A DNA stretch of 64,000 bases from Macrostomum lignano (Eukaryota), in NCBI GenBank assembly GCA_002269645.1, contig NIVC01002064.1, positions 124,001 through 188,000 on the forward strand, written 5' to 3'. Below the pieces are notes generated by a model. It searched no databases, was not told the DNA's origin, and was given only the letters and a program-made list of their open reading frames with translations. Positions within the stretch are counted from its first letter, which is position 1, and every line of letters starts with the position of its first letter. Both the position numbers and the translations under genes were made by a program. Below are positions 15,744 through 53,280 of this stretch, piece after piece.

Positions 15744-15999
15744 GCATCGCAGCGTATTAAAGAAGTTGTCCCTGTAGCTTTGGCTGAAGGCGCAATAAAT
15801 CCAGGGATTAACGCAGCAGTTGCTGATGCCGACCCACTGGATTAGCGGCAGGCTGCCCTCCAGCTTGAGCTCTCGGCTGACGTAGAACAGAATGCCGACG
15901 ATGTGCAGCGGCAGCCAGGAGATGGCGAAGATCAGCACGACGGTGGCCAGCATCTTCACCAGCCGGCTCATCTGCTTCTTGTCGTGCGCGTTCGATGAT
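15744..15999 (-). CDS. Neuropeptide GPCR exon 4/5 (TM6-TM7)
   Basis: KMLATVVLIFAISWLP and SNCCVNPWIY motifs; acceptor CTCCCAG|A phase 2, donor TGC|GTGAGG phase 0. Confidence 0.93.
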
Positions 16000-16044
16000 C
16001 TGGGAGGAGAGAGGGAGTTTTTCGATCAGATTCCCATGTGATCA

Positions 16045-16740
16045 GGGTCCTAATGGGATCAAGACTCCTAATTGGATCAAGAATCCTAATGGGATCAAGA
16101 ATCCCAATGGGATCAAGAATCGTAATCGAATCAAGAATCCTAATCGGATTAAGAATCCTAATGGGATCAAGAATCTTAATGGGATCAAGAATCCTAATGG
16201 GATCAAGAATCCTAATTGGATCAAGAATCCTAATTGGATCAAGAATCCTAATGGGATCAAGAATCCCAATGGGATCAAGAATCGTAATCGAATCAAGAAT
16301 CCTAATCGGATTAAGAATCCTAATGGGATCAAGAATCCTAATGGGATCAAGAATCCTAATGGGATCAAGAATCCTAATGGGATCAAGAATCCTAATGGGA
16401 TCAAGAATCCTAATGGGATCAAGAATCCTAATGGGATTAAGAATCCTAATGGGATCAAGAATCCTAATGGGATCAAGAATCCTAATGGGATTAAGAATCC
16501 TAATGGAATCAAGAATCCTAATGGGATCAAGAATCCTAATGGGATCAAGAATCCTAATGGGATCAAGAATCCTAATGGGATCAAGAATCCTAATAGGATC
16601 AAGAATCCTAATGGGATCAAGAATCCTAATGGGATCTATCCTAATGGGATCAAGAGTTCTAATCGGATCAAGAATCCTAATGGGATCAAGAATCCTAATG
16701 GGATCAAGAATCCTAATGGGATCAAGAATCCTAATTGGAT
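16045..16740 (+). repeat. 18-bp minisatellite (AAGAATCCTAATGGGATC)n
   Basis: About 38 copies, starting ~45 bp from the exon 4 acceptor. Confidence 0.97.
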
Positions 16741-17217
16741 AAAAAGTCCTACTAGGATGAAGTTAGACGTAAACAATAGGCGTAAACCTATTTTTTGCTC
16801 AAAAACGTTCACCGCTAACCGCTACTTTCAGTAGTCTATATAGCAATGAATCCTAGTCAGTTTATGCACCCAACGGATAATCTAGATTGGTCAAAGCACA
16901 TCTGCTCCGGCTGTTTTAGCCGGGAAATTTTGAAATGGCTGTTGTCCTTTCTTATTCTGTTCAAAGTTTTCGCTTCTGTCTGTGATGAATATTTTAAGGG
17001 CCGGCCCCAGTATTTTGCTGTGCGAAAGAAACTCAGGAAAACTGACACAAGATAGCCATCGATATGTTGGGCAGGAATGGGCCAGGGAATTCTGGAAATA
17101 TTCTGTTTAGTTATTCGCGAAAATAGAAAGTAAAAACTTGTAAGAGGTAATCTGTGGCTGAAGCATTTTTAGTGTGCCAATAACCTATCGACTAGAAGCA
17201 GAAGCTGGGTGACTTTG

Positions 17218-29140: not shown

Positions 29141-29467
29141 CCCAGCTCAGACACTATCAGTGCAGGGGCACTTGTGCAACAATACTAATATTAAATTTTG
29201 CAGGTGCTCTTTGCTATCAAAATCAGCTGTCGAGCTCGGACTCAAAGTGTTTTCCCGGTTTTTCTTATAAAAGCAGATTCTAGAGCAACACGAATGGCAC
29301 TGCAGGCCTTTGTCCAGGAGGGCCCTAATTGCTTTGTCCGAATTCGGTGCTCGCGTCTGGGCAAAAGCAGATTATTAGAAGATGAAAGAGCGAAGCACAA
29401 ATTGAAGGGGAGACCCGCAGAAAGCGGCTTAGAAAAAGCAGAGGCGCTGCCGGTGATTCGTTCCGAA

Positions 29468-30084
29468 AGGCTGAGACTGAGAAGGCTGAGACTGAGAAGG
29501 CTGAGACTGAGAAGGCTGAGACTGAGAAGGCTGAGACTGAGAAGGCTGAGACTGAGAAGGCTGAGACTGAGAAGGCTGAGACTGAGAAGGCTGAGACTGA
29601 GAAGGCTGAGACTGAGAAGGCTGAGACTGAGAAGGCTGAGACTGAGAAGGCTGAGACTGAGAAGGCTGAGACTGAGAAGGCTGAGACTGAGAAGGCTGAG
29701 ACTGAGAAGGCTGAGACTGAGAAGGCTGAGACTGAGAAGGCTGAGACTGAGAAGGCTGAGACTGAGAAGGCTGAGACTGAGAAGGCTGAGACTGAGAAGG
29801 CTGAGACTGAGAAGGCTGAGACTGAGAAGGCTGAGACTGAGAAGGCTGAGACTGAGAAGGCTGAGACTGAGAAGGCTGAGACTGAGAAGGCTGAGACTGA
29901 GAAGGCTGAGACTGAGAAGGCTGAGACTGAGAAGGCTGAGACTGAGAAGGCTGAGACTGAGAAGGCTGAGACTGAGAAGGCTGAGACTGAGAAGGCTGAG
30001 ACTGAGAAGGCTGAGACTGAGAAGGCTGAGACTGAGAAGGCTGAGACTGAGAAGGCTGAGACTGAGAAGGCTGAGACTGAGAAG
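29468..30084 (+). repeat. 15-bp minisatellite (AGGCTGAGACTGAGA)n
   Basis: About 41 perfect copies. Confidence 0.98.
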
Positions 30085-30222
30085 ACTTCTATTTGTAAGT
30101 CTTTTAGTGACGTCACTTTTGCCTACTTTATATTCTATGGCAAGACTTGGCTTGAGGGTGCTTGGCTCGGGGGCTGTACATGAAAATTGGCTGACGGGTT
30201 GTCGTGCGATTCGCAGCCATGA

Positions 30223-30621
<399 letters not shown>

Positions 30622-37025: not shown

Positions 37026-37760
37026 ATGTCCCGTCTAGCGTCGGCCGCATCGGCGTCGGATTCGACTGTCGACGCGACAAAACCATTGTGGACAGAGCCG
37101 GAGCGGATCAACGGCGCCGGTGGAGGAGGAGCTCCTTATCAACATCGCCGTCTTCAACAAGAATTCGTTGACGAAGTTGACCAGCTGGACGGCGAGACGG
37201 CGGCGGCAGCGGCGGCGGTGGCGGCGGAGACAACAGATCCTGCAGAGCTCGGCGAGGATGACTTGGAGACCTACGTCGCCGAGGAGGACGAAGCCGACGA
37301 AGAAATTGACGACGAGGAGGACGCCGAGGAGGAAGAGGAGCTGATGAACGGCGGCGGGCTCGGGCTGCACTACCCGACTCTGTCCGAGCCGTGCAGCGTC
37401 CGGCACCCCACCGAGCAGAACCCGGCAGCCGAGCTCTGCAGCTGGGTGCTGCGCTACGCCGGCCTGTCGCTCCTCTGCCTGCCGCTGCTGGCGCTGGCCT
37501 GCATGGCCTGCCTGCCGCTGGCCTGCCTCCGACTGGCTGCCGGCGCGTTCGGCAAGACTCCGCTGAGCCACAGGGAGCTCGCCTGGTTCCGCCGGGACGC
37601 CAGAGCCGTTGTAGCTCGACTGGACGTGCGAAATAACGGCGGCAGTACCGGCGGCGGTCTGACGCTGGCTCGGCTGCGTCAGCTGGTCGGCCAACGAGTG
37701 ATCGGCGCCGAGGATAAATCTGGCGAGAGGCGCTATCCAAGATTTAGCCAGCGTGTCGAG
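37026..37760 (+). CDS. WS/DGAT-family acyltransferase-like protein, exon 1/2
   Basis: ATG37026; acidic D/E tract, Cys-rich hydrophobic segment, LSHRELAWF, RYPRFSQRVE; donor GAG|GTCTGT phase 0 (245 codons). Confidence 0.82.
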
Positions 37761-37794
37761 GTCTGTTGGGACGGCTGGTTGGCTGTGCAGGGGG

Positions 37795-38180
37795 AGCGAG
37801 GTGGCTGTGTACGGGGAGTGAGGTGGCTGTGCAGGAGGAGTGGGGTGGCTGTGTACGGGGAGTGAGGTGGCTGTGCAGGAGGAGTGGGGTGGCTGTGTAG
37901 GGGGAGTGGGGGGTTTCCAGGGGGAGTGAGGTGGCTGTGCAGGAGGAGTGAGGTGGCTGTGCAGGAGGAGTGAGAGTGGCTGTGCAGGAGGAGTGAGGTG
38001 GCTGAGCAGGAGGAGTGAGGTGGCTCTGCAGGAGGAGTGAGAGTGGCTGTGCAGGAGGAGTGAGAGTGGCTGTGCAGGAGGAGTGAGAGTGGCTGTGCAG
38101 GAGGAGTGAGAGTGGCTGTGCAGGAGGAGTGAGAGTAGCTGTGCAGGAGGAGTGAGAGTGGCTGTGCAGGAGGAGTGAGG
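37795..38180 (+). repeat. 22/23-bp minisatellite (GAGTGGCTGTGCAGGAGGAGTGA)n
   Basis: Fills most of the WS/DGAT-like intron. Confidence 0.94.
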
Positions 38181-38279
38181 CGGTTTCCAGGGGGAGTTGG
38201 GTGGCGGAAAGAATACGATGGTTTCAGTGTGTTAGAAACTTTTTTAAACCTTTTCTACCACCTATATTACCGATTGCAG

Positions 38280-39410
38280 GACACCTGCGCAGGCCCAGTT
38301 TGGGCAACCGACACCACCTTCAGCTTAGATGATCATGTCCGCGAGATCCAACCGCGACTGCGCGGCCCCGCCGACCTGTCCGCCTTCTTGGCCTCGGCGA
38401 CGGCTCGCCCGTTCGCACGCGACCGCCCGCTCTGGGAGCTGCAGTTCCAGGCCGCCTACGGTTCGGCGGGCGACGCCCTGCTGGTCTACAGGCAGCACCC
38501 GAGCTTCGCCGACGGCCTCAGCATGACCCGCTTGCTGTCCGGCGCTCTCTGCGACTCGCCAGCACACGATGTGGCGTCCACGTTGGCGACAAATTCGGCA
38601 GCAACCTCGGCAGCGGCGGCGCAGCAGCCCGGAGTCACAGCGGCCGGCCTGCTCGAGGAGGCCCGCTGCCTCTTCCTGGCGCCATCGGTGCTGCTGCTGC
38701 ACTACCTGCTGGGCCGGCCGGACTGCAACCCACTGCACGGCGGCCCGCAGAGGTTGGCCAGGCGGCGGCGGCCGGCGCAGCTTCGGGCGAGTCTCGACGC
38801 CCGCCAGGTGTGGCGCGTCCGCCAGGTGACTCGGACCAGCCTTAATGATGCCTGCCTGCTGCTGCTGACCGGGGCGCTGCGCTCCTACAATCAGCTGCTG
38901 GGCCTGCCGCACCCGCCCGACTGCCGCGCCGCCCTGGCTGTCGACCTTGGCGGTGGCGAGGCCGCCGGCCGCCTGGGCAGTCGCTACGCGCTGTCCACTG
39001 TGCGGCTGCCAGTCAGCGTCGAAGGCATGCTGCCGCAGCTCTGGCAGCTTCGGGCTCGCCTCGCCGAACTCCGAGCCGAGGCCCGGTTTCGCGCTGTCCG
39101 CCTGGTGGACTCGCTGATGTTCTGCGCTCTGCCGGCCGGCTTGGCCAGCCGGGCTGTCCGGCTGCACACGGACAGGGCCAGCTGCTTGGCGCTGTGCCTG
39201 CCCGGCCCGGCCGGCCCGCTGTGGCTGGACGGCTGTCCGGTTGACGGCGTCTGCTTCTGGTTCCCCGCGTCCGAGCCCGTCCGGCTGTCCGTGACATTCT
39301 ATTCTTATTCGGACAGCCTATCCGTCTGCCTGTCGGCTAGCCAGTCTGTCCGGTGTCCGCGCCTGCTCATCCGCTGCATGCGGGCTCAGGTCTGTGACTT
39401 GGTAGCCTGA
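38280..39410 (+). CDS. WS/DGAT-family acyltransferase-like protein, exon 2/2
   Basis: Acceptor TTGCAG|GAC phase 0; W..D..FSLDDHV, PFARDRPLWE, YRQHPSFADG (HHxxxDG position), TSLND..L, SVTFYSY C-terminal domain. join(37026..37760,38280..39410) = 621 aa. Confidence 0.88.
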   Translation, partial: DTCAGPVWATDTTFSLDDHVREIQPRLRGPADLSAFLASATARPFARDRPLWELQFQAAYGSAGDALLVYRQHPSFADGLSMTRLLSGALCDSPAHDVASTLATNSAATSAAAAQQPGVTAAGLLEEARCLFLAPSVLLLHYLLGRPDCNPLHGGPQRLARRRRPAQLRASLDARQVWRVRQVTRTSLNDACLLLLTGALRSYNQLLGLPHPPDCRAALAVDLGGGEAAGRLGSRYALSTVRLPVSVEGMLPQLWQLRARLAELRAEARFRAVRLVDSLMFCALPAGLASRAVRLHTDRASCLALCLPGPAGPLWLDGCPVDGVCFWFPASEPVRLSVTFYSYSDSLSVCLSASQSVRCPRLLIRCMRAQVCDLVA

Positions 39411-39411
39411 T

Positions 39412-40030
39412 TAATGACCGATTTCTTGAATGACCAATTTCTTGAATGACCGATTTCTTGAATGACCAATTTCTTGAATGACCGATTTCTTGAATGATCG
39501 ATTTCTTGAATGATCGATTCTTGAATGACAATTTCTTGAATGACCGATTCTTGAATGACCGATTCTTGAATGACCAATTTCTTGAATGACCGATTTCTTG
39601 AATGACCGATTCTTGAATGACCGATTTCTTGAATGACCGATTTCTTGAATGACCGATTTCTTGAATGACCGATTCTTGAATGACCAATTCTTGTATGACC
39701 AATTCTCGAATGACCGATTTCTTGAATGACCGATTTCTTGAATGACCGATTTCTTGAATGACCGATTTCTTGAATGACCGATTTCTTGAATGACCGATTC
39801 TTGAATGACCAATTCTTGTATGACCAATTCTCGAATGACCGATTTCTTAAATGACCGATTTCTTGAATGACCGATTCTTGAATGACCGATTTCTTGAATG
39901 ACCGATTTCTTGAATGACCGATTTCTTGAATGACCGATTTCTTGAATGACCGATTTCTTGAATGACCGATTCTTGAATGACCGATTTCTTGAATGACCGA
40001 TTCTTGAATGACCGATTTCTTATTGAATGA
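39412..40030 (+). repeat. 16/17-bp minisatellite (AATGACCGATT(T)CTTG)n
   Basis: Starts 2 bp after the TGA stop at 39410. Confidence 0.96.
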
Positions 40031-40604
40031 CTAATTCCCACCCTTACCGAACACCACCCCTAAGTGTGGAGCAGTAGAAGTGAATTTTCGTTTGCCTTGT
40101 CGCAGATGCAGCAAAACGCTTCGAAGTTCCGCTAAGCTGCACTGAATTCTCAGTTGGCATCCGCCCCTTCTCTCCATCTTTGTCATATTTGATATATTTT
40201 ATACCACCTAGAAAGTCTGCTTGGCTCTGCTGCAACTTAGAAGACTCAGCCTCAGGCTTAAAATAGGCTGAGTCTCCATCGCTCAATCTCGAGAATCTAT
40301 CCTCCCAAAGCTGCTTTAAGTTTTTTGCCCGCTTTCCTTTCTCTTTTAGAAGAAGCAGAAGAAGTGCCGCTTCAGCCCGCCCAGGGGGGGGGAAGCAGCG
40401 GGGTGCCTAATTGTTGCCCGCAGCTTGGGACGGGATGGAGCAACTGCCAGCCAATTAATCTCCCCCAAGCTGAGAAGGGTTGGGATTATTTAGAAAGCTG
40501 GCAAATTTATCCCGTCCCGTTGGAAAAGTGCAATCTTTTATTTTGATTTTTATGATTTTGACGTGGGTCGTAAGAGTCGGCTGAGCTGGGATAACGTCCA
40601 ATGG

Positions 40605-41135
40605 ACAGGTATAATGTTGCATAGGACATGTGTAATGTTGCATAGGACAGGTATAATGTTGTATAGGACAGGTATAATGTTGCATAGGACAGGTACAATG
40701 TTGCATATGACAGGTATAATGTTGTATAGGACAGGTATAATGTTGCATAGGACAGGTATAATGTTGTATAAGACAGGTATAATGTTGTATAAGACAGGTA
40801 TAATGTTGCATAGGACAGGTATAATGTTGTATAGGACAGGTATAATGTTGCATAGGACAGGTACAATGTTGCATATGACAGGTATAATGTTGTATAGGAC
40901 AGGTATAATGTTGCATAGGACAGGTATAATGTTGTATAAGACAGGTATAATGTTGTATAAGACAGGTATAATGTTGTATAGGACAGGTATAATGTTGCAT
41001 AGGACAGGTATAATGTTGCATAGGACAGGTATAATGTTGTATAAGACAGGTATAATGTTGTATAAGACAGGTATAATGTTGTATAGGACAGGTATAATGT
41101 TGCATAGGACAGGTACAATGTTGCATAGGACAGGT
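40605..41135 (+). repeat. 21-bp minisatellite (GGACAGGTATAATGTTG(C/T)ATA)n
   Basis: About 25 copies. Confidence 0.96.
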
Positions 41136-41984
41136 ATATTAATTCGAAGTATGAGATTCTAAACGACAGGTATACCGGTACAAATACTCTAATTATAATC
41201 CAATTTCCAAACTCGAATGGCGGTGCCGTTGATCCAACACAACCGAGCTTTCTCACCCTGACACAGTCACCTCAGGGCCCGCAAACATTTTCTGCTCAGG
41301 GCCAAGCAAGTTCGACGATCTGCTTTCACTTCCTCCCGCTTCGGCGCCCAACCCCCCTTCCCTAATCTTCTGCCTCGAGGGACTTCTCTCCATCTCCATC
41401 CCATCGTAGTTTTTCTATACGAGCGCACCCTTCTCACTCTCTCGCCGTCCTGTGTTATCCCACTGCTAGTGCGAGTTAGAAGCGGCTCAAACAGAGGAAC
41501 AGAGCAAAATCCTGTAGCTACTATCCTACTTTTTCTTTCCCCACTCCCATCTATCTTCTTCCGAACCAGCAGGCCTAACTAAGTTTAAACCGAATACTCT
41601 CTACAACTCACGTGAGCGTGGGAACGAGCTCCCTTCTCTCTGACTGTCGGTCTGATATTGGCGTGGCTGTCTTTTGCGGACGAACTTTGTCCAGCAACTG
41701 GAAGCTTCAAAGCTTTCGCTCGATTAAAACACAATTATTTAAATATCCGAGAAAAGTTGGCCTGGAATTTTTCGTGCAATTGGTGCTCATGAGGGCCGAC
41801 ACCCCCCCCCCCCCTATAGCACATAGAGTGGACATGCCTGACGATTAGAAAGTGTGCGTGCTCAGGGGCCAGCGGAATGGGCTGGTTACCTTCTCGCTTG
41901 CTTTGAGTCTGTGCAGCGATGCAGTGAGGCAGTACACTAAAATACCGTACTTCTTTAACGTAGGAGGAGGAGCGAGCGACTTGT

Positions 41985-42300
41985 GAAAAGGGGCGTGGTA
42001 AGGGAGCCAAGAGGCGTCAACCAATCAGCTCTCGAGGAGGAACGACTTGTGGAAAGGGGTGTGGTTAGAGAGCCAAGAGGCGTCAACCAATCAGCTCTCG
42101 GGGAGGAACGACCTGTGGAGAGGGGTGTGGTTAGAGAGCCAAGAGGCGTCAACCAATTAGCTCTCGAGGAGGAATGACCTGTGGAAAGGGGTGTGGTTAG
42201 AGAGCCAAGAGGCGTCAACCAATTAGCTCTCGAGGGGGAACGACCTGTGGAAAGGGGTGTGGTTAGAGAGCCAAGAGGCGTCAACTAATCAGCTTTCGAG
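41985..42300 (+). repeat. 66-bp tandem repeat carrying CCAAT and GC/GT-box motifs, ~4.5 copies
   Basis: AGCCAAGAGG recurs at 42005 and 42071; units contain AACCAAT(C/T)AG, GGG(C/T)GTGG and GGCGTCA. Confidence 0.92.
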
Positions 42301-42392
42301 AAGGAGGGAGCGACTCGTACAGGCCACAACATGGCTTCGACTTGGAGATCAGCATCGATCTTTAGCGGACCGCCCTCGCCTTCTGTTTGCAG

Positions 42393-43076
42393 GCCGCTGC
42401 GCTGAGCAAGCTCCTAGAGCATCGCCGAGTTCCAGGCGAGGGCCGCGAGCTCGCCAAACGGAATCGAGCCGCTCGAATCGCCGCGGCAAACAACCCGGAG
42501 GCTTCGTCGACTTCGTCGGCGGCGTTGAATTCGCGTCGCAGGTCGCCGTCGCCACAGCCTGGCGACTTCAGCGGCCTCGGAGTTGGCGGCGGCTCCGACC
42601 AGGCTCTTGCCGTGTCATCGGCGGACAGCCTGACGGTGGCATCGACACCTCGAGGAAGCCGTGAATCCAGCGAGGAGCCGCACCAGCTGGAGGCCTCAGC
42701 CCTGCTGTTGGCGGCCCAGACAGCCAGCTACGACGACCTGCAACTGCGACTTGCCGGCGTTCAGCTCCGGCTGCAGGATCCCGACGGCCTTGCCCCGGAC
42801 GAGCGCGACCTGCTGAAGGCGGAGTTCCACCTGCTCATGACGGAGCTGCGTCGGCGAAAGACGAACCGCGGCGACGGCGACTTCGACGATCCGGAGTTCG
42901 ACCGGGTGCCGGCGGCGCGGCGCAAGCAGTCACTTGTGTCGCTTCGCTCGTTCGGCCGACGGCGCTCGACTTCGTCGCAGGTCGGTCTGGCGGTTGTCGG
43001 CGGCTCGTCTATGGAGCAGCCCAACATCACGGTGTTCACCAGCCGGCGCTTCGAGACCTGGGAGTACGAAGTCTGA
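42393..43076 (+). CDS. Uncharacterised protein, main or terminal coding exon (low-complexity N-part, helical hairpin, C-terminal ETWEYEV)
   Basis: Strong GC3 bias; frame open from 42366; acceptor TGTTTGCAG|GCC; true start unresolved. Confidence 0.65.
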   Translation, partial: AAALSKLLEHRRVPGEGRELAKRNRAARIAAANNPEASSTSSAALNSRRRSPSPQPGDFSGLGVGGGSDQALAVSSADSLTVASTPRGSRESSEEPHQLEASALLLAAQTASYDDLQLRLAGVQLRLQDPDGLAPDERDLLKAEFHLLMTELRRRKTNRGDGDFDDPEFDRVPAARRKQSLVSLRSFGRRRSTSSQVGLAVVGGSSMEQPNITVFTSRRFETWEYEV

Positions 43077-43200
43077 GCTGGGGTCTCCCCTGAGAGTCCC
43101 GAGAGTGCTCAGTCTGAGCTGTCACCAATGAGAGTCCCGAGAGTGCTCAGTCTGAGCTGTCACCAATGAGAGTCCCGAGAGTGCTCAGTCTGAGCTGTCA
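43071..43200 (+). repeat. 38-bp tandem repeat x3 overlapping the stop-codon context
   Basis: TGAGAGTCCC at 43091 and 43129; the unit contains AGTCTGAGCTG, identical to the stop context at 43071-43081. Confidence 0.9.
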
Positions 43201-47164: not shown

Positions 47165-48654
47165 CTACAGCCAGGTGATCAGCGGCAGCAGCGAGGCGCT
47201 AGAAATCCGGCCAACCTGAAAGTCCAAGCTGACCCCGTCCAGGAAGTTCAGCGGAAACTCCACCAGGAAGCCGCGAACCTCGGTCTCCAGCTGGTGCACC
47301 GCCTGCTCCCGGTCGGTGGCGGCCAGGCTGGGCTCGCTAACCCAGTCTCGAAGCTCCTTGTAGTTGCTGGTCCGGTCAGTGGGGTAGCAGTGGAACACCT
47401 GCTCGAATATCTCCGTGTTTCGCCGGGCCGTGGCCGACCAGACCTCGTGGAAGAATTGGTCGCTAGTTGGGTCGGCCAGAGCCTGGTTGGCGGGATCCGA
47501 GATGGACAGGCCGAGGTGCTCGCGCATCAGGCAGCGGCGCAGCGAGCCGCAGAACGAGCCGGCCTGGGCCGGAGCGGCTGACGCCGCCGCCTGCCAGTCG
47601 GCCGGTGCCAAATCCGAGCCGGAGTCCTCGAATCGAACCGCGATCTCCGAGTCCCGGTAGCCTAGCAACGACCGGTCGTTGATGTTGGCGGAGCCGATGA
47701 TGGCGACTCGATCGTCCGCTATCATCAGCTTGCTGTGCACGTAGATGAGCTCGGAGACCAGCTCGCCGCCAGCCAGCTGGCCCCAGGTTCGCAGCGCGCA
47801 AACGGACAAATAGTCGGACGCTTGAATGCCCGCATCGGACAGCTGGGCCATCATGGAGCTCTCAGATCGGCACAGGCAGGCGTAGGTGTGGTGCAGGATC
47901 TTCTTGATGCTGTCAGCGCTGCTGGGACTCTCGGCTACGTCGCCTTCGAACTGCGGCAGCAGCGGCAGCACCAAGTAGACGCGGAATTTCCGGCCCTCTC
48001 GATTGGCTCGGACGATCCGCTGGACAAGCCGGCTGGCTATGGGGTTCTGCACCGGCCACTTCCGGCCGAGGGTCTCGTCTGCGCAGCTGATGAAGAACTG
48101 GTTCTCAATGTAGACATAGTACTCTGAGTTGTCGATCGCGTCGCACATAGCGCTGAGCACGGACGTCTCGGGCTCCTCAATGCCGCCGGACCACATGCCC
48201 AGGCTGCGCAGTACGTTCACTCGATTGGCAGACTTTGGCGCGATGCTCTTGAATGGCAGCGGCGGCTGACGGACCGACGGCTTGCTGTTCGAGTCTGTTT
48301 GGGACAGGTCAGATTTTACCTGGTATTGATGCTGCTGCTGCTGCTGCTGAGGCTGGTGGTGATGCAGCCGGTCCAGCAGCCCGAGAAAAGTGCGCCGCTG
48401 CCCCGGCTGCTTGGCCGCGCTGGCCGCATTCTCGCCGTCAGCGTCCGGCTCCAAGTCGCTGTTGTCCGGCCCGGCCGGCTCCGGCTTCAAAGATTTTGGC
48501 ATGAGCAGCGGCAGCTGGCAGCCGGACTTGCTCTTCACGGTGAAGTTCCAGCGCTCGATGAAGTGTCGGGCCACGTCGCGGGCAGCGTTGCCGCCGACGA
48601 CGCAGCCGATGTCGTGCCAGGGCATCCGGGGCACGCGGCCGCGGTCAACCAGCT
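47165..48654 (-). CDS. PLD1: Phospholipase D1/2, terminal exon (PRMPWHD, polybasic motif, second HKD)
   Basis: PRMPWHD, AARDVARHFIERWN, YIENQFF, YVHSKLMIADD, GSANINDRSLLG.RDSE; acceptor CCGCAG|AG phase 1; ends LITWL-stop. Confidence 0.96.
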
Positions 48655-48717
48655 CTGCGGGTTGCGGTCGGGCGGGAGGGTTCAAGCTCGAAACTTCCCA
48701 AAAACTTGAAGATTCGG

Positions 48718-51829: not shown

Positions 51830-53280
51830 TGCTTCAGAATCTGAGTTATAAGTCTCAGGTTAGTAATGTGAGGCTTCAGAATCTGAGTTATAAGTCTCAG
51901 GTTAGTAATGTGAGGCTTCAGAATCTGAGTTATAAGTCTCAGGTTAGTAATGTGAGGCTTCAGAATCTGAGCTATAAGTCTCAGGTTTAGTAATGTGAGG
52001 CTTCAGAATCTGAGCTATAAGTCTCAGGTTTAGTAATGTGAGGCTTCAGAATCTGAGTTATAAGTCTCAGGTTAGTAATGTGAGGCTTCAGAATCTGAGC
52101 TATAAGTCTCAGGTTTAGTAATGTGAGGCTTCAGAATCTGAGCTATAAGTCTCAGGTTAGTAATGTGAGGCTTCAGAATCTGAGCTATAAGTCTCAGGTT
52201 TAGTAATGTGAGGCTTCAGAATCTGAGCTATAAGTCTCAGGTTAGTAATGTGAGGCTTCAGAATCTGAGCTATAAGTCTCAGGTTTAGTAATGTGAGGCT
52301 TCAGAATCTGAGCTATAAGTCTCAGGTTTAGTAATGTGAGGCTTCAGAATCTGAGCTATAAGTCTCAGGTTAGTAATGTGAGGCTTCAGAATCTGAGTTA
52401 TAAGTCTCAGGTTTAGTAATGTGAGGCTTCAGAATCTGAGCTATAAGTCTCAGGTTAGTAATGTTATGCTTCAGAATCTGAGCTATAAGTCTCAGGTTAA
52501 TTAATGTGAGGCTTCAGAATCTGAGCTATAAGTCTCAGGTTAGTAATGTTATGCTTCAGAATCTGAGCTATAAGTCTCAGGTTAGTAATGTTATGCTTCA
52601 GAATCTGAGCTATAAGTCTCAGGTTAGTAATGTTATGCTTCAGAATCTGAGTTATAAGTCTCAGGTTAGTAATGTTATGCTTCAGAATCTGAGCTATAAG
52701 TCTCAGGTTAGTAATGTTATGCTTCAGAATCTGAGTTATAAGTCTCAGGTTAGTAATGTTATGCTTCAGAATCTGAGTTATAAGTCTCAGGTTAGTAATG
52801 TTATGCTTCAGAATCTGAGTTATAAGTCTCAGGTTAGTAATGTTATGCTTCAGAATCTGAGTTATAAGTCTCAGGTTAGTAATGTTATGCTTCAGAATCT
52901 GAGTTATAAGTCTCAGGTTAGTAATGTTATGCTTCAGAATCTGAGCTATAAGTCTCAGGTTAGTAATGTTATGCTTCAGAATCTGAGTTATAAGTCTCAG
53001 GTTAGTAATGTTATGCTTCAGAATCTGAGTTATAAGTCTCAGGTTAGTAATGTTATGCTTCAGAATCTGAGCTATAAGTCTCAGGTTAGTAATGTTATGC
53101 TTCAGAATCTGAGCTATAAGTCTCAGGTTAGTAATGTTATGCTTCAGAATCTGAGTTATAAGTCTCAGGTTAGTAATGTTATGCTTCAGAATCTGAGCTA
53201 TAAGTCTCAGGTTTAGTAATTTTATGCTTCAGAATCTGAGTTATAAGTCTCAGGTTTAGTAATTTTATGCTTCAGAATCC
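51830..53280 (+). repeat. 42/43-bp minisatellite (GCTTCAGAATCTGAG(C/T)TATAAGTCTCAGGTTAGTAATGTTAT)n
   Basis: About 34 copies; left half is the GTGAG subtype, right half the GTTAT subtype. Confidence 0.97.

Follow-up and report, generated by a model that had tools for sequence, protein, structure and literature searches.

A Macrostomum lignano WS/DGAT-fold protein and its animal relatives with a replaced second histidine in the HHxxxDG motif

We report here on a gene of the free-living flatworm Macrostomum lignano (Platyhelminthes), Mlig032752.g1, which lies on a 64,000-nucleotide stretch of genomic DNA (hereafter the window, to which all positions refer) and encodes a protein of 842 amino acids in three exons. 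By homology, the protein is a WS/DGAT superfamily member. It keeps the fold, the PLW and ND motifs, and, within HHxxxDG, the first His and Asp-Gly, whereas the second His, the general base, is replaced, here by Pro and in its relatives by Pro or other residues unable to act as a base. Together with these relatives it makes up an animal family of the WS/DGAT fold that is ancient and has been inherited vertically, and the M. lignano gene is real and under purifying selection. Our preferred reading of the sequence, to which we give slightly better than even credence, is that of a noncanonical and probably noncatalytic protein that binds acyl lipids and is anchored to a membrane through a conserved double-proline hydrophobic segment.

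Results

Both Pfam domains of the family were detected above their gathering cut-offs, WS_DGAT_cat (PF03007) at residues 235 to 357 (43.8 bits against 23.6, E = 3.5e-11) and WS_DGAT_C (PF06974) at residues 478 to 614 (40.6 bits against 20.7, E = 3.4e-10), so that the WS/DGAT layout recognized in an initial annotation of this region withstood the HMMER search proposed there as a check. In a phmmer search against PDB sequences, the only matches were Marinobacter 6CHJ (E = 4.9e-10) and Acinetobacter AbWSD1 7NXG (E = 1e-8). PLW (motif I) and ND (motif II), the defining WS/DGAT motifs beside HHxxxDG (PMC4520822, PMC5407786), are both present in the translated codons (Table 1). An AlphaFold2 model of residues 186 to 632, built on 63 aligned sequences, reached a mean pLDDT of 87.8 and a pTM of 0.89 and predicts a two-lobed CAT/NRPS-C-like fold (NRPS, nonribosomal peptide synthetase). 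Its top Foldseek matches in the PDB were again 6CHJ (E = 1.3e-19, TM 0.61/0.66) and 7NXG (TM 0.62/0.69), and further matches comprised the condensation, heterocyclization (Cy), epimerization, and X domains of NRPSs, with E values of about 1e-13 to 1e-16 for the X, Cy, and dehydrating domains. The NCBIfam model TIGR02946 aligned to residues 235 to 619 with 128.5 bits, well under its curated cut-off of 309.95; by this cut-off and by the defining catalytic motif, the protein is not a canonical WS/DGAT member.

HHxxxDG is the catalytic site of WS/DGATs (PMC5407786), and in active members the first His may be Ser or Asp whereas the second is strictly conserved (PMC5513132). At this site, the M. lignano protein reads R-Q-H318-P319-S-F-A-D323-G324, the codons agreeing exactly with the initial reading, and an HHxxxDG with a second His as general base is absent. 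The phmmer alignments paired "vHHslvDG" and "iHHamvDG" of 6CHJ and 7NXG with "qHPsfaDG" without a gap, which places Pro319 at the second, catalytic His and His318 at the first His of HHxxxDG. MAFFT and hmmalign returned the same register, and all three thus support the earlier assignment of Pro to the catalytic position. The possibility that the His encoded at 38496 (His318) occupies that position had been raised against this assignment; it aligns with the first His instead, and a register shift was ruled out, all alignments being gap-free across R-x-H-[H/P]-x-x-x-D-G. The Pro codon, CCG, is indeed two changes away from a His codon, as had been pointed out.

To place the protein among its relatives, we searched 1.84 billion representative sequences exhaustively with phmmer and obtained 2295 homologs at E <= 0.001. 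Word-indexed searches with the flatworm protein or with a 21-sequence alignment returned almost nothing, and a consensus emitted from the hidden Markov model of the clade described below succeeded. The best approximately 60 matches were long proteins (500 to 1350 amino acids) with the motif R-x-H-[P/Q/L/M/A/S]-x-x-x-D-G, and the lower-ranked homologs, of a typical 420 to 480 amino acids, read HH. Among the long proteins with named sources, all were metazoan: annelids (Owenia, Paralvinella), a brachiopod (Lingula), molluscs (Lottia, Argopecten, Ylistrum, Elysia), echinoderms (Asterias, Amphiura, Antedon), chelicerates (Tachypleus, Limulus, Centruroides, Ixodes, Ornithodoros, Varroa, Pycnogonum, Cordylochernes), a millipede (Chamberlinius), crustaceans (Scylla, Macrobrachium, Palaemon), insects (Timema, Ladona), a tardigrade (Hypsibius), and a bdelloid rotifer (Didymodactylos). 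No vertebrate, cnidarian, sponge, or nematode name was seen among the matches, a limited list that is not proof of absence.

We aligned 196 domain sequences with hmmalign and built from them a neighbor-joining tree on Kimura distances, computed in numpy. At the motif, 115 of these domains read HH, 34 HP, 27 HQ, 6 HL, 4 HA, 4 HM, and 2 HS, the other states occurring singly. One clade of 82 sequences (bootstrap 84/100) takes in every non-HH sequence except three, the M. lignano protein included; the second His is missing in 78 of its 82 members (35 HP, 26 HQ, and 17 with another non-His residue), and the 114 sequences outside it are mostly bacterial and read HH. Subgroups within the clade match taxonomy (echinoderms, lophotrochozoans, chelicerates, pancrustaceans, rotifers), and a flatworm-like branch unites the M. 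lignano protein with two HP sequences (P0005 and P0190). It had been asked whether HP..DG marks a conserved metazoan clade: a single clade apart from the HH sequences does exist, but it is not specific for Pro, since Gln, Leu, Met, Ala, Ser, Thr, and rarely His are also found. The unicellular opisthokont Syssomonas multiformis has a 431-amino-acid homolog with a canonical HH (P0047, EukProt), which falls outside the animal clade and hints that the His was lost after animals split from such protists. Between the vertical and horizontal origins that had been envisaged, the agreement of the clade with animal taxonomy, the introns, and the synteny described below decide for the vertical one.

A column test quantified what the clade has kept and lost (Table 2): from the alignment we took the 49 columns whose residue is conserved to at least 80% among the 114 outgroup sequences, and we scored that residue in the clade. 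The first His, the motif Asp, and the Trp of PLW are retained almost without exception and the second His is nearly gone. The second position admits Pro, Gln, Leu, Met, Ala, Ser, and Thr as well as, now and then, His, and its side chain therefore has no chemical role in the clade. Three C-lobe motifs are relaxed, and in the M. lignano protein they read AVDLG (for PVNLR), GSRY (for GNxF), and CLPGP (for NVPGP). Clade-specific conserved motifs have appeared in turn, namely, QVTRSTLND, TEGxIPRLW, and D.N.L. Of the 34 positions most conserved in the clade, the M. lignano protein retains 29 (clade median, 32), and it is the most divergent member, with a mean identity of 28% compared with 36% within the clade. 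It lacks the KPRFG linker motif of the clade as well as several C-lobe residues and is unusually rich in Ala, Arg, and Leu, a composition driven by GC content. The motif Gly is itself changed in some clade members, such as P0036, P0119, P0183 (from the brittle star Amphiura), P0185, and P0022, which have D-A for D-G, in P0036 and P0119 together with a restored HH; these variants point to further lineage-specific drift of the motif loop.

Table 2. Conservation of selected WS/DGAT positions in the outgroup and in the animal clade
Position	Outgroup	Clade
Second His	98%	5% (P 35, Q 26, L 6, M 4, A 4, others)
First His	99%	99%
Motif Asp	100%	100%
Motif Gly	100%	90%
W of PLW	99%	100%
N of ND	97%	93%
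D of ND	98%	90%
P of PVNLR	99%	72%
R of PVNLR	90%	62%
N of GNxF	98%	45%
N of NVPGP	95%	60%
G of NVPGP	99%	70%
Last P of NVPGP	97%	71%

Upstream of the domain, residues 1 to 136 are acidic and of low complexity (Glu 16% and Asp 8% over residues 1 to 145) and are followed by a hydrophobic, Cys-rich segment (Table 1); composition and Kyte-Doolittle profile both agree with the initial description of this region. The segment carries two prolines about 10 residues apart (C-L-P-x9-C-L-P-L) and lies 103 amino acids upstream of the W motif. A double-proline hydrophobic stretch of about 30 to 35 residues was found in 21 of the 23 clade members inspected, at 103 to 152 amino acids upstream of the W motif (103 to 127 in 19 of the 21), the scorpion and tick version reading F-P-x9-LLP-L; the soluble HH relative P0054 has no such segment. 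On the other side of the domain, LL..RR[IV]PG (LLA[N/H]RRIPG) follows the WS/DGAT C-domain in most relatives, and the M. lignano protein has both this element and the double-proline segment. The membrane anchor suggested initially is thus predicted from a segment that is kept across the clade, and its proline-broken hydrophobic stretch would fit either a helix that spans the membrane or a monotopic hairpin such as those that direct proteins to the endoplasmic reticulum (ER) and lipid droplets.

A second genomic copy, g4 (contig NIVC01000525.1, locus L001 10001-16910), has three exons and splice sites as in g1, and CAC-CCG stands at the motif in both. The two coding sequences differ at 28 codons, 20 synonymously and 8 nonsynonymously (8 amino acids), and the method of Nei and Gojobori gave a dS of 0.030, a dN of 0.0044, and a dN/dS of 0.145. 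The excess of synonymous changes is significant over the whole coding sequence (binomial P = 1.2e-6) and within the domain (12 synonymous versus 5 nonsynonymous, P = 2.2e-4). Relaxed selection, proposed initially as a finding that would undermine the annotation, is not what these two copies display, and a pseudogene was rejected on the same dN/dS. M. lignano has at least three annotated copies (g1, g2, and g4), the proteins P0001 and P0004 being among them; the g2 model is an N-terminally truncated prediction of 516 amino acids that begins at Met326, just past the motif. The M. lignano gene identifiers presumably derive from a transcriptome assembly.

Discussion

The M. lignano protein is readily compared with the bacterial WS/DGATs (Acinetobacter baylyi AtfA/AbWSD1, 7NXG; Marinobacter Ma2, 6CHJ) and plant WSD1, with which it shares the two-domain fold PF03007 plus PF06974 as well as PLW, ND, the first His, and Asp-Gly. 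It differs from them in the Pro at the catalytic His, in the relaxed C-lobe motifs, in its NCBIfam score (128 versus 310 bits), and in size, its 842 amino acids, compared with about 460 for the enzymes, adding the acidic N-terminus, the double-proline segment, RR[IV]PG, and a tail of about 210 amino acids. The same anchor, WS/DGAT domain, RRIPG, and H[P/Q/...]xxxDG recur in its metazoan relatives (for example, in Owenia, Lingula, Argopecten, Asterias, Centruroides, Tachypleus, and Macrobrachium), which databases label "uncharacterized protein," "putative diacylglycerol O-acyltransferase tgs1," or "DUF1298 domain-containing protein."

In the working model that we prefer, canonical His-catalyzed acyl transfer from acyl-CoA to an alcohol or diacylglycerol would have been given up, and the hydrophobic tunnel would have been kept to bind an acyl chain, acyl-CoA, or a neutral lipid. 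The double-proline segment (30 to 35 residues) would anchor the protein to a membrane, probably that of the ER or of lipid droplets, and both ends of the protein, the disordered acidic N-terminus and the long C-terminal tail, could recruit partners or regulate them. Both the loss of catalysis and the binding or adaptor role are what we infer from the sequence comparisons. The plant CER2-LIKE proteins of the BAHD family, which likewise have a CAT-like acyltransferase fold, offer a precedent for such a mode of action: these ER-associated proteins lack the catalytic His in some cases and can dispense with it where it is present, still require the motif Asp for structure, and modify fatty acid elongation without acyl transfer (PMC5489795). 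This is an analogy and not a common membership, since BAHD proteins have HxxxD instead of HHxxxDG, the CER2-LIKE proteins are from plants, and a partner, the KCS condensing enzyme, is known for them only. Closer in fold superfamily, and found among our Foldseek matches, are the X domain of glycopeptide synthetases (4TX2) and the Cy and dehydrating C-like domains (5T3E, 7R9X, 8S6L) of NRPSs. The X domain combines a degenerate HHxxxDG with a recruiting, noncatalytic role, and in Cy domains a degenerate HHxxxDG goes along with altered chemistry; unlike the M. lignano protein, these domains are parts of bacterial megasynthases and have neither a membrane anchor nor a lipid context.

Several observations weigh against a noncatalytic protein. 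Conservation of the motif loop R-x-H-x-[CS]-x-x-D-G-x-S-L is very strong, and 81 of 82 clade members have the first His, a pattern that would also fit catalysis taken over by that His, and the same fold catalyzes without HHxxxDG in the heterocyclization (DxxxxD) and dehydrating domains of NRPSs, which are among the Foldseek matches. Four nested members of the clade, P0189, P0110, P0036 (from the millipede Chamberlinius), and P0119, read HH, and the tree is a neighbor-joining tree on Kimura distances only, in which many of the clade's sequences are unnamed entries from metagenomes or transcriptomes. The main rival reading, which we consider less likely than the preferred one, is that the protein is still an enzyme, be it an acyltransferase, a thioesterase, or another acyl-CoA-dependent catalyst, whose base would be His318, another conserved residue, or the substrate itself through substrate assistance; the metazoan clade would then represent a mechanistic variant and not pseudoenzymes. 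Conservation of the motif loop, PLW, and ND equals that in the bacterial enzymes, invariant acidic and basic residues have arisen specifically in the clade (for example, in TEGxIPRLW and D..N and at the Arg of QVTRS), superfamily members that catalyze without HHxxxDG figure among the structural matches (Cy, 5T3E; dehydrating, 7R9X and 8S6L), and yeast Atf1p remains a thioesterase after mutation of its catalytic His (PMC5489795). These arguments meet with the fact that characterized WS/DGATs strictly conserve the second His and can dispense with the first (PMC5513132), with the tolerance of chemically unrelated residues at the second position, and with the relaxation of the C-lobe motifs near the tunnel (PVNLR, GNxF, and NVPGP), which are more degraded still in M. 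lignano.

We consider it very improbable that the M. lignano gene is a decaying copy or the functionless product of a base-call, assembly, or annotation artifact. Its protein is the most divergent of the clade (28% versus 36% mean identity), has lost 5 of 34 clade-conserved residues, and is encoded amid tandem repeats, but two independent genomic copies have an intact 842-codon frame and identical splice sites, their differences are biased toward synonymous changes (20 versus 8; dN/dS 0.145, P = 1.2e-6), and CCG is found in both, HP being the commonest state of the clade and the structural model reaching a pLDDT of 87.8. We give hardly any credence to a recent horizontal gain from bacteria or to bacterial contamination of the assembly, which the better-known occurrence of the family in bacteria and plants and the GC content of the gene (about 60%, compared with about 45% for the window) could have suggested. 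The gene has two spliceosomal GT-AG introns and eukaryotic, repeat-rich flanks, a phospholipase D gene is syntenic at both copies, the nearest relatives are all metazoan in a clade whose topology follows animal taxonomy, and the unicellular opisthokont Syssomonas carries a canonical HH homolog; transfer and contamination were rejected on the introns, the synteny, and the metazoan clade.

If we extend the preferred reading of a noncatalytic lipid-binding protein to the whole clade, a bacterial-type HH synthase, such as still exists in Syssomonas, may have been converted near the base of the animals into a membrane-anchored, noncatalytic acyl-lipid sensor or regulatory subunit that has been under purifying selection in most invertebrate phyla. 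We rate this scenario as just short of an even proposition. Were it true, the clade would constitute an unrecognized, phylum-spanning pseudoenzyme family of animal lipid metabolism.

WS/DGATs are regarded as bacterial and plant enzymes, and neutral-lipid synthesis in animals is credited to DGAT1, DGAT2, and AWAT. Our results add a third, WS/DGAT-derived family in invertebrates, from flatworms to echinoderms and arthropods. The gene and its orthologs are already public as hypothetical proteins or automatically named acyltransferases, and the label "diacylglycerol O-acyltransferase" is attached to them although 95% of the clade sequences are without the residue that does the chemistry; the naming of the clade as diacylglycerol acyltransferases is probably wrong. 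If noncatalytic, the family would provide a widespread lipid-binding regulator in ER and lipid-droplet biology and a clear case of the passage from enzyme to pseudoenzyme, and if catalytic, a new mechanism within the HHxxxDG superfamily. Since RNA interference and transgenesis exist for M. lignano, either reading is directly testable. A search of the literature accessible to us for the animal WS/DGAT-like clade, its missing His, or the gene identifier found no description, the sole near-match being Anopheles AGAP012388, labeled "DUF1298 domain-containing protein" in an expression study (PMC11756067) and comparable to the clade by this label alone.

Gene structure and neighborhood

The three exons (Table 1) form a coding sequence of 2529 nucleotides, whose 842-amino-acid product is identical, residue for residue, to PAA61174.1 (BOX15_Mlig032752g1; P0003); the homolog search gave BOX15_Mlig032752g4 (P0001; 842 amino acids, 99% identity) as the nearest database protein. 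The initial annotation had described an intact frame of 621 codons ending at 39410. Straight translation of 37026-39410 encounters 7 in-frame stops, from 37866 to 38150, and removal of the first GT-AG intron joins two listed open reading frames (ORFs) into the 621 codons, so that the frame is intact after splicing and not as a single ORF. The end at 39410 falls about 3.7 kb short, since the stop at 39408-39410 is intronic, as follows from the identity of the three-exon product to PAA61174.1; the real end is at 43076, and the product has 842 residues, not 621. The in-frame stops of the repeat-filled intron and the intronic terminal stop rule out 37026-39410 as a single ORF. A tblastn search of the window with P0001 located the third exon at about 42375-43073. 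The second donor repeats the hexamer of the first and pairs with an acceptor, TTTGCAG/GCC, at 42392/42393. Independent support for the three-exon model comes from the recurrence in relatives of the LLA[N/H]RRIPG encoded by exon 3; a Pfam search of the 227 exon-3 residues gave no match.

Table 1. Features of Mlig032752.g1 in the window
Feature	Position	Strand	Details
Exon 1	37026-37760	+	Codons 1-245; 99% identity in tblastn with P0001; donor GAG/GTCTGT at 37760/37761; covers the disordered acidic N-terminus, the hydrophobic anchor, and the first part of the WS/DGAT N-domain (YPRFSQ at 37734-37751)
Hydrophobic Cys-rich segment	37434-37529	+	LCSWVLRYAGLSLLCLPLLALACMACLPLACL, residues 137-168; Kyte-Doolittle 19-residue windows up to 2.44
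Intron 1	37761-38279	+	GT...AG, 519 bp; filled by a 22-bp tandem repeat (37780-38205), in frame for part of its length and the source of the in-frame stops
Exon 2	38280-39389	+	Codons 246-615; acceptor TTGCAG/GAC at 38279/38280, donor CTCAG/GTCTGT at 39389/39390; carries the greater part of WS_DGAT_cat and the whole of WS_DGAT_C
Motif I, PLW	38427-38435	+	RPLWEL, PLW at residues 295-297; kept (direct reading)
Degenerate active-site motif	38490-38516	+	R-Q-H318-P319-S-F-A-D323-G324; AGG CAG CAC CCG AGC TTC GCC GAC GGC
His318 codon	38496-38498	+	Direct reading
Pro319 codon	38499-38501	+	CCG (direct reading)
Motif II, ND	38844-38849	+	SLNDAC, ND at residues 434-435; kept
Intron 2	39390-42392	+	GT...AG; holds the false stop 39408-39410 and three minisatellite arrays
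Exon 3	42393-43076	+	Codons 616-842 and stop; 97% identity in tblastn; starts with AAALSKLLEHRRVPG; encodes LLEHRRVPG (42411-42437, residues 622-630), then a Ser/Arg-rich tail of about 210 amino acids

The intron 1 repeat has a TRF period of 22, 19.2 copies, and the consensus TGGCTGTGCAGGAGGAGTGAGG. Because 22 is not a multiple of 3, the repeat reads through several frames; it artificially lengthens both flanking exon ORFs (37026-37865 and 38175-39410) and probably misled the initial frame count. The GC content of about 60% was measured over 37026-39410. Minisatellite arrays in intron 2 and the 3' flank (39413-40021, 40603-41138, 41967-42305, and 43091-43200, with periods of 16, 21, 66, and 38 bp) yield long spurious ORFs on the minus strand ("VIQE" and "MQHYTCP" repeats).

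A tblastn search found no second copy of the gene within the window. The ORF at 15995-16834, of 279 amino acids and thus of the length of the exon 1 ORF, was rejected as a tandem copy, being a simple NPNGIK repeat, one of the many repeat arrays of the window. For the ORFs at 52506-53216 and 29198-30613, Pfam returned weak matches below threshold, with the acidic C-terminal region of calreticulin and with pentapeptide repeats, respectively; these are probably low-complexity artifacts. Downstream, a phospholipase D gene (Pfam PLDc/PLDc_2) at 47165-48685 on the minus strand is arranged tail to tail with the WS/DGAT-like gene, a lipid-related neighborhood that may be coincidental. A phospholipase D neighbor is also found at the paralogous locus (L001 21805-26910), and its presence beside both copies indicates that the duplication spans more than one gene.

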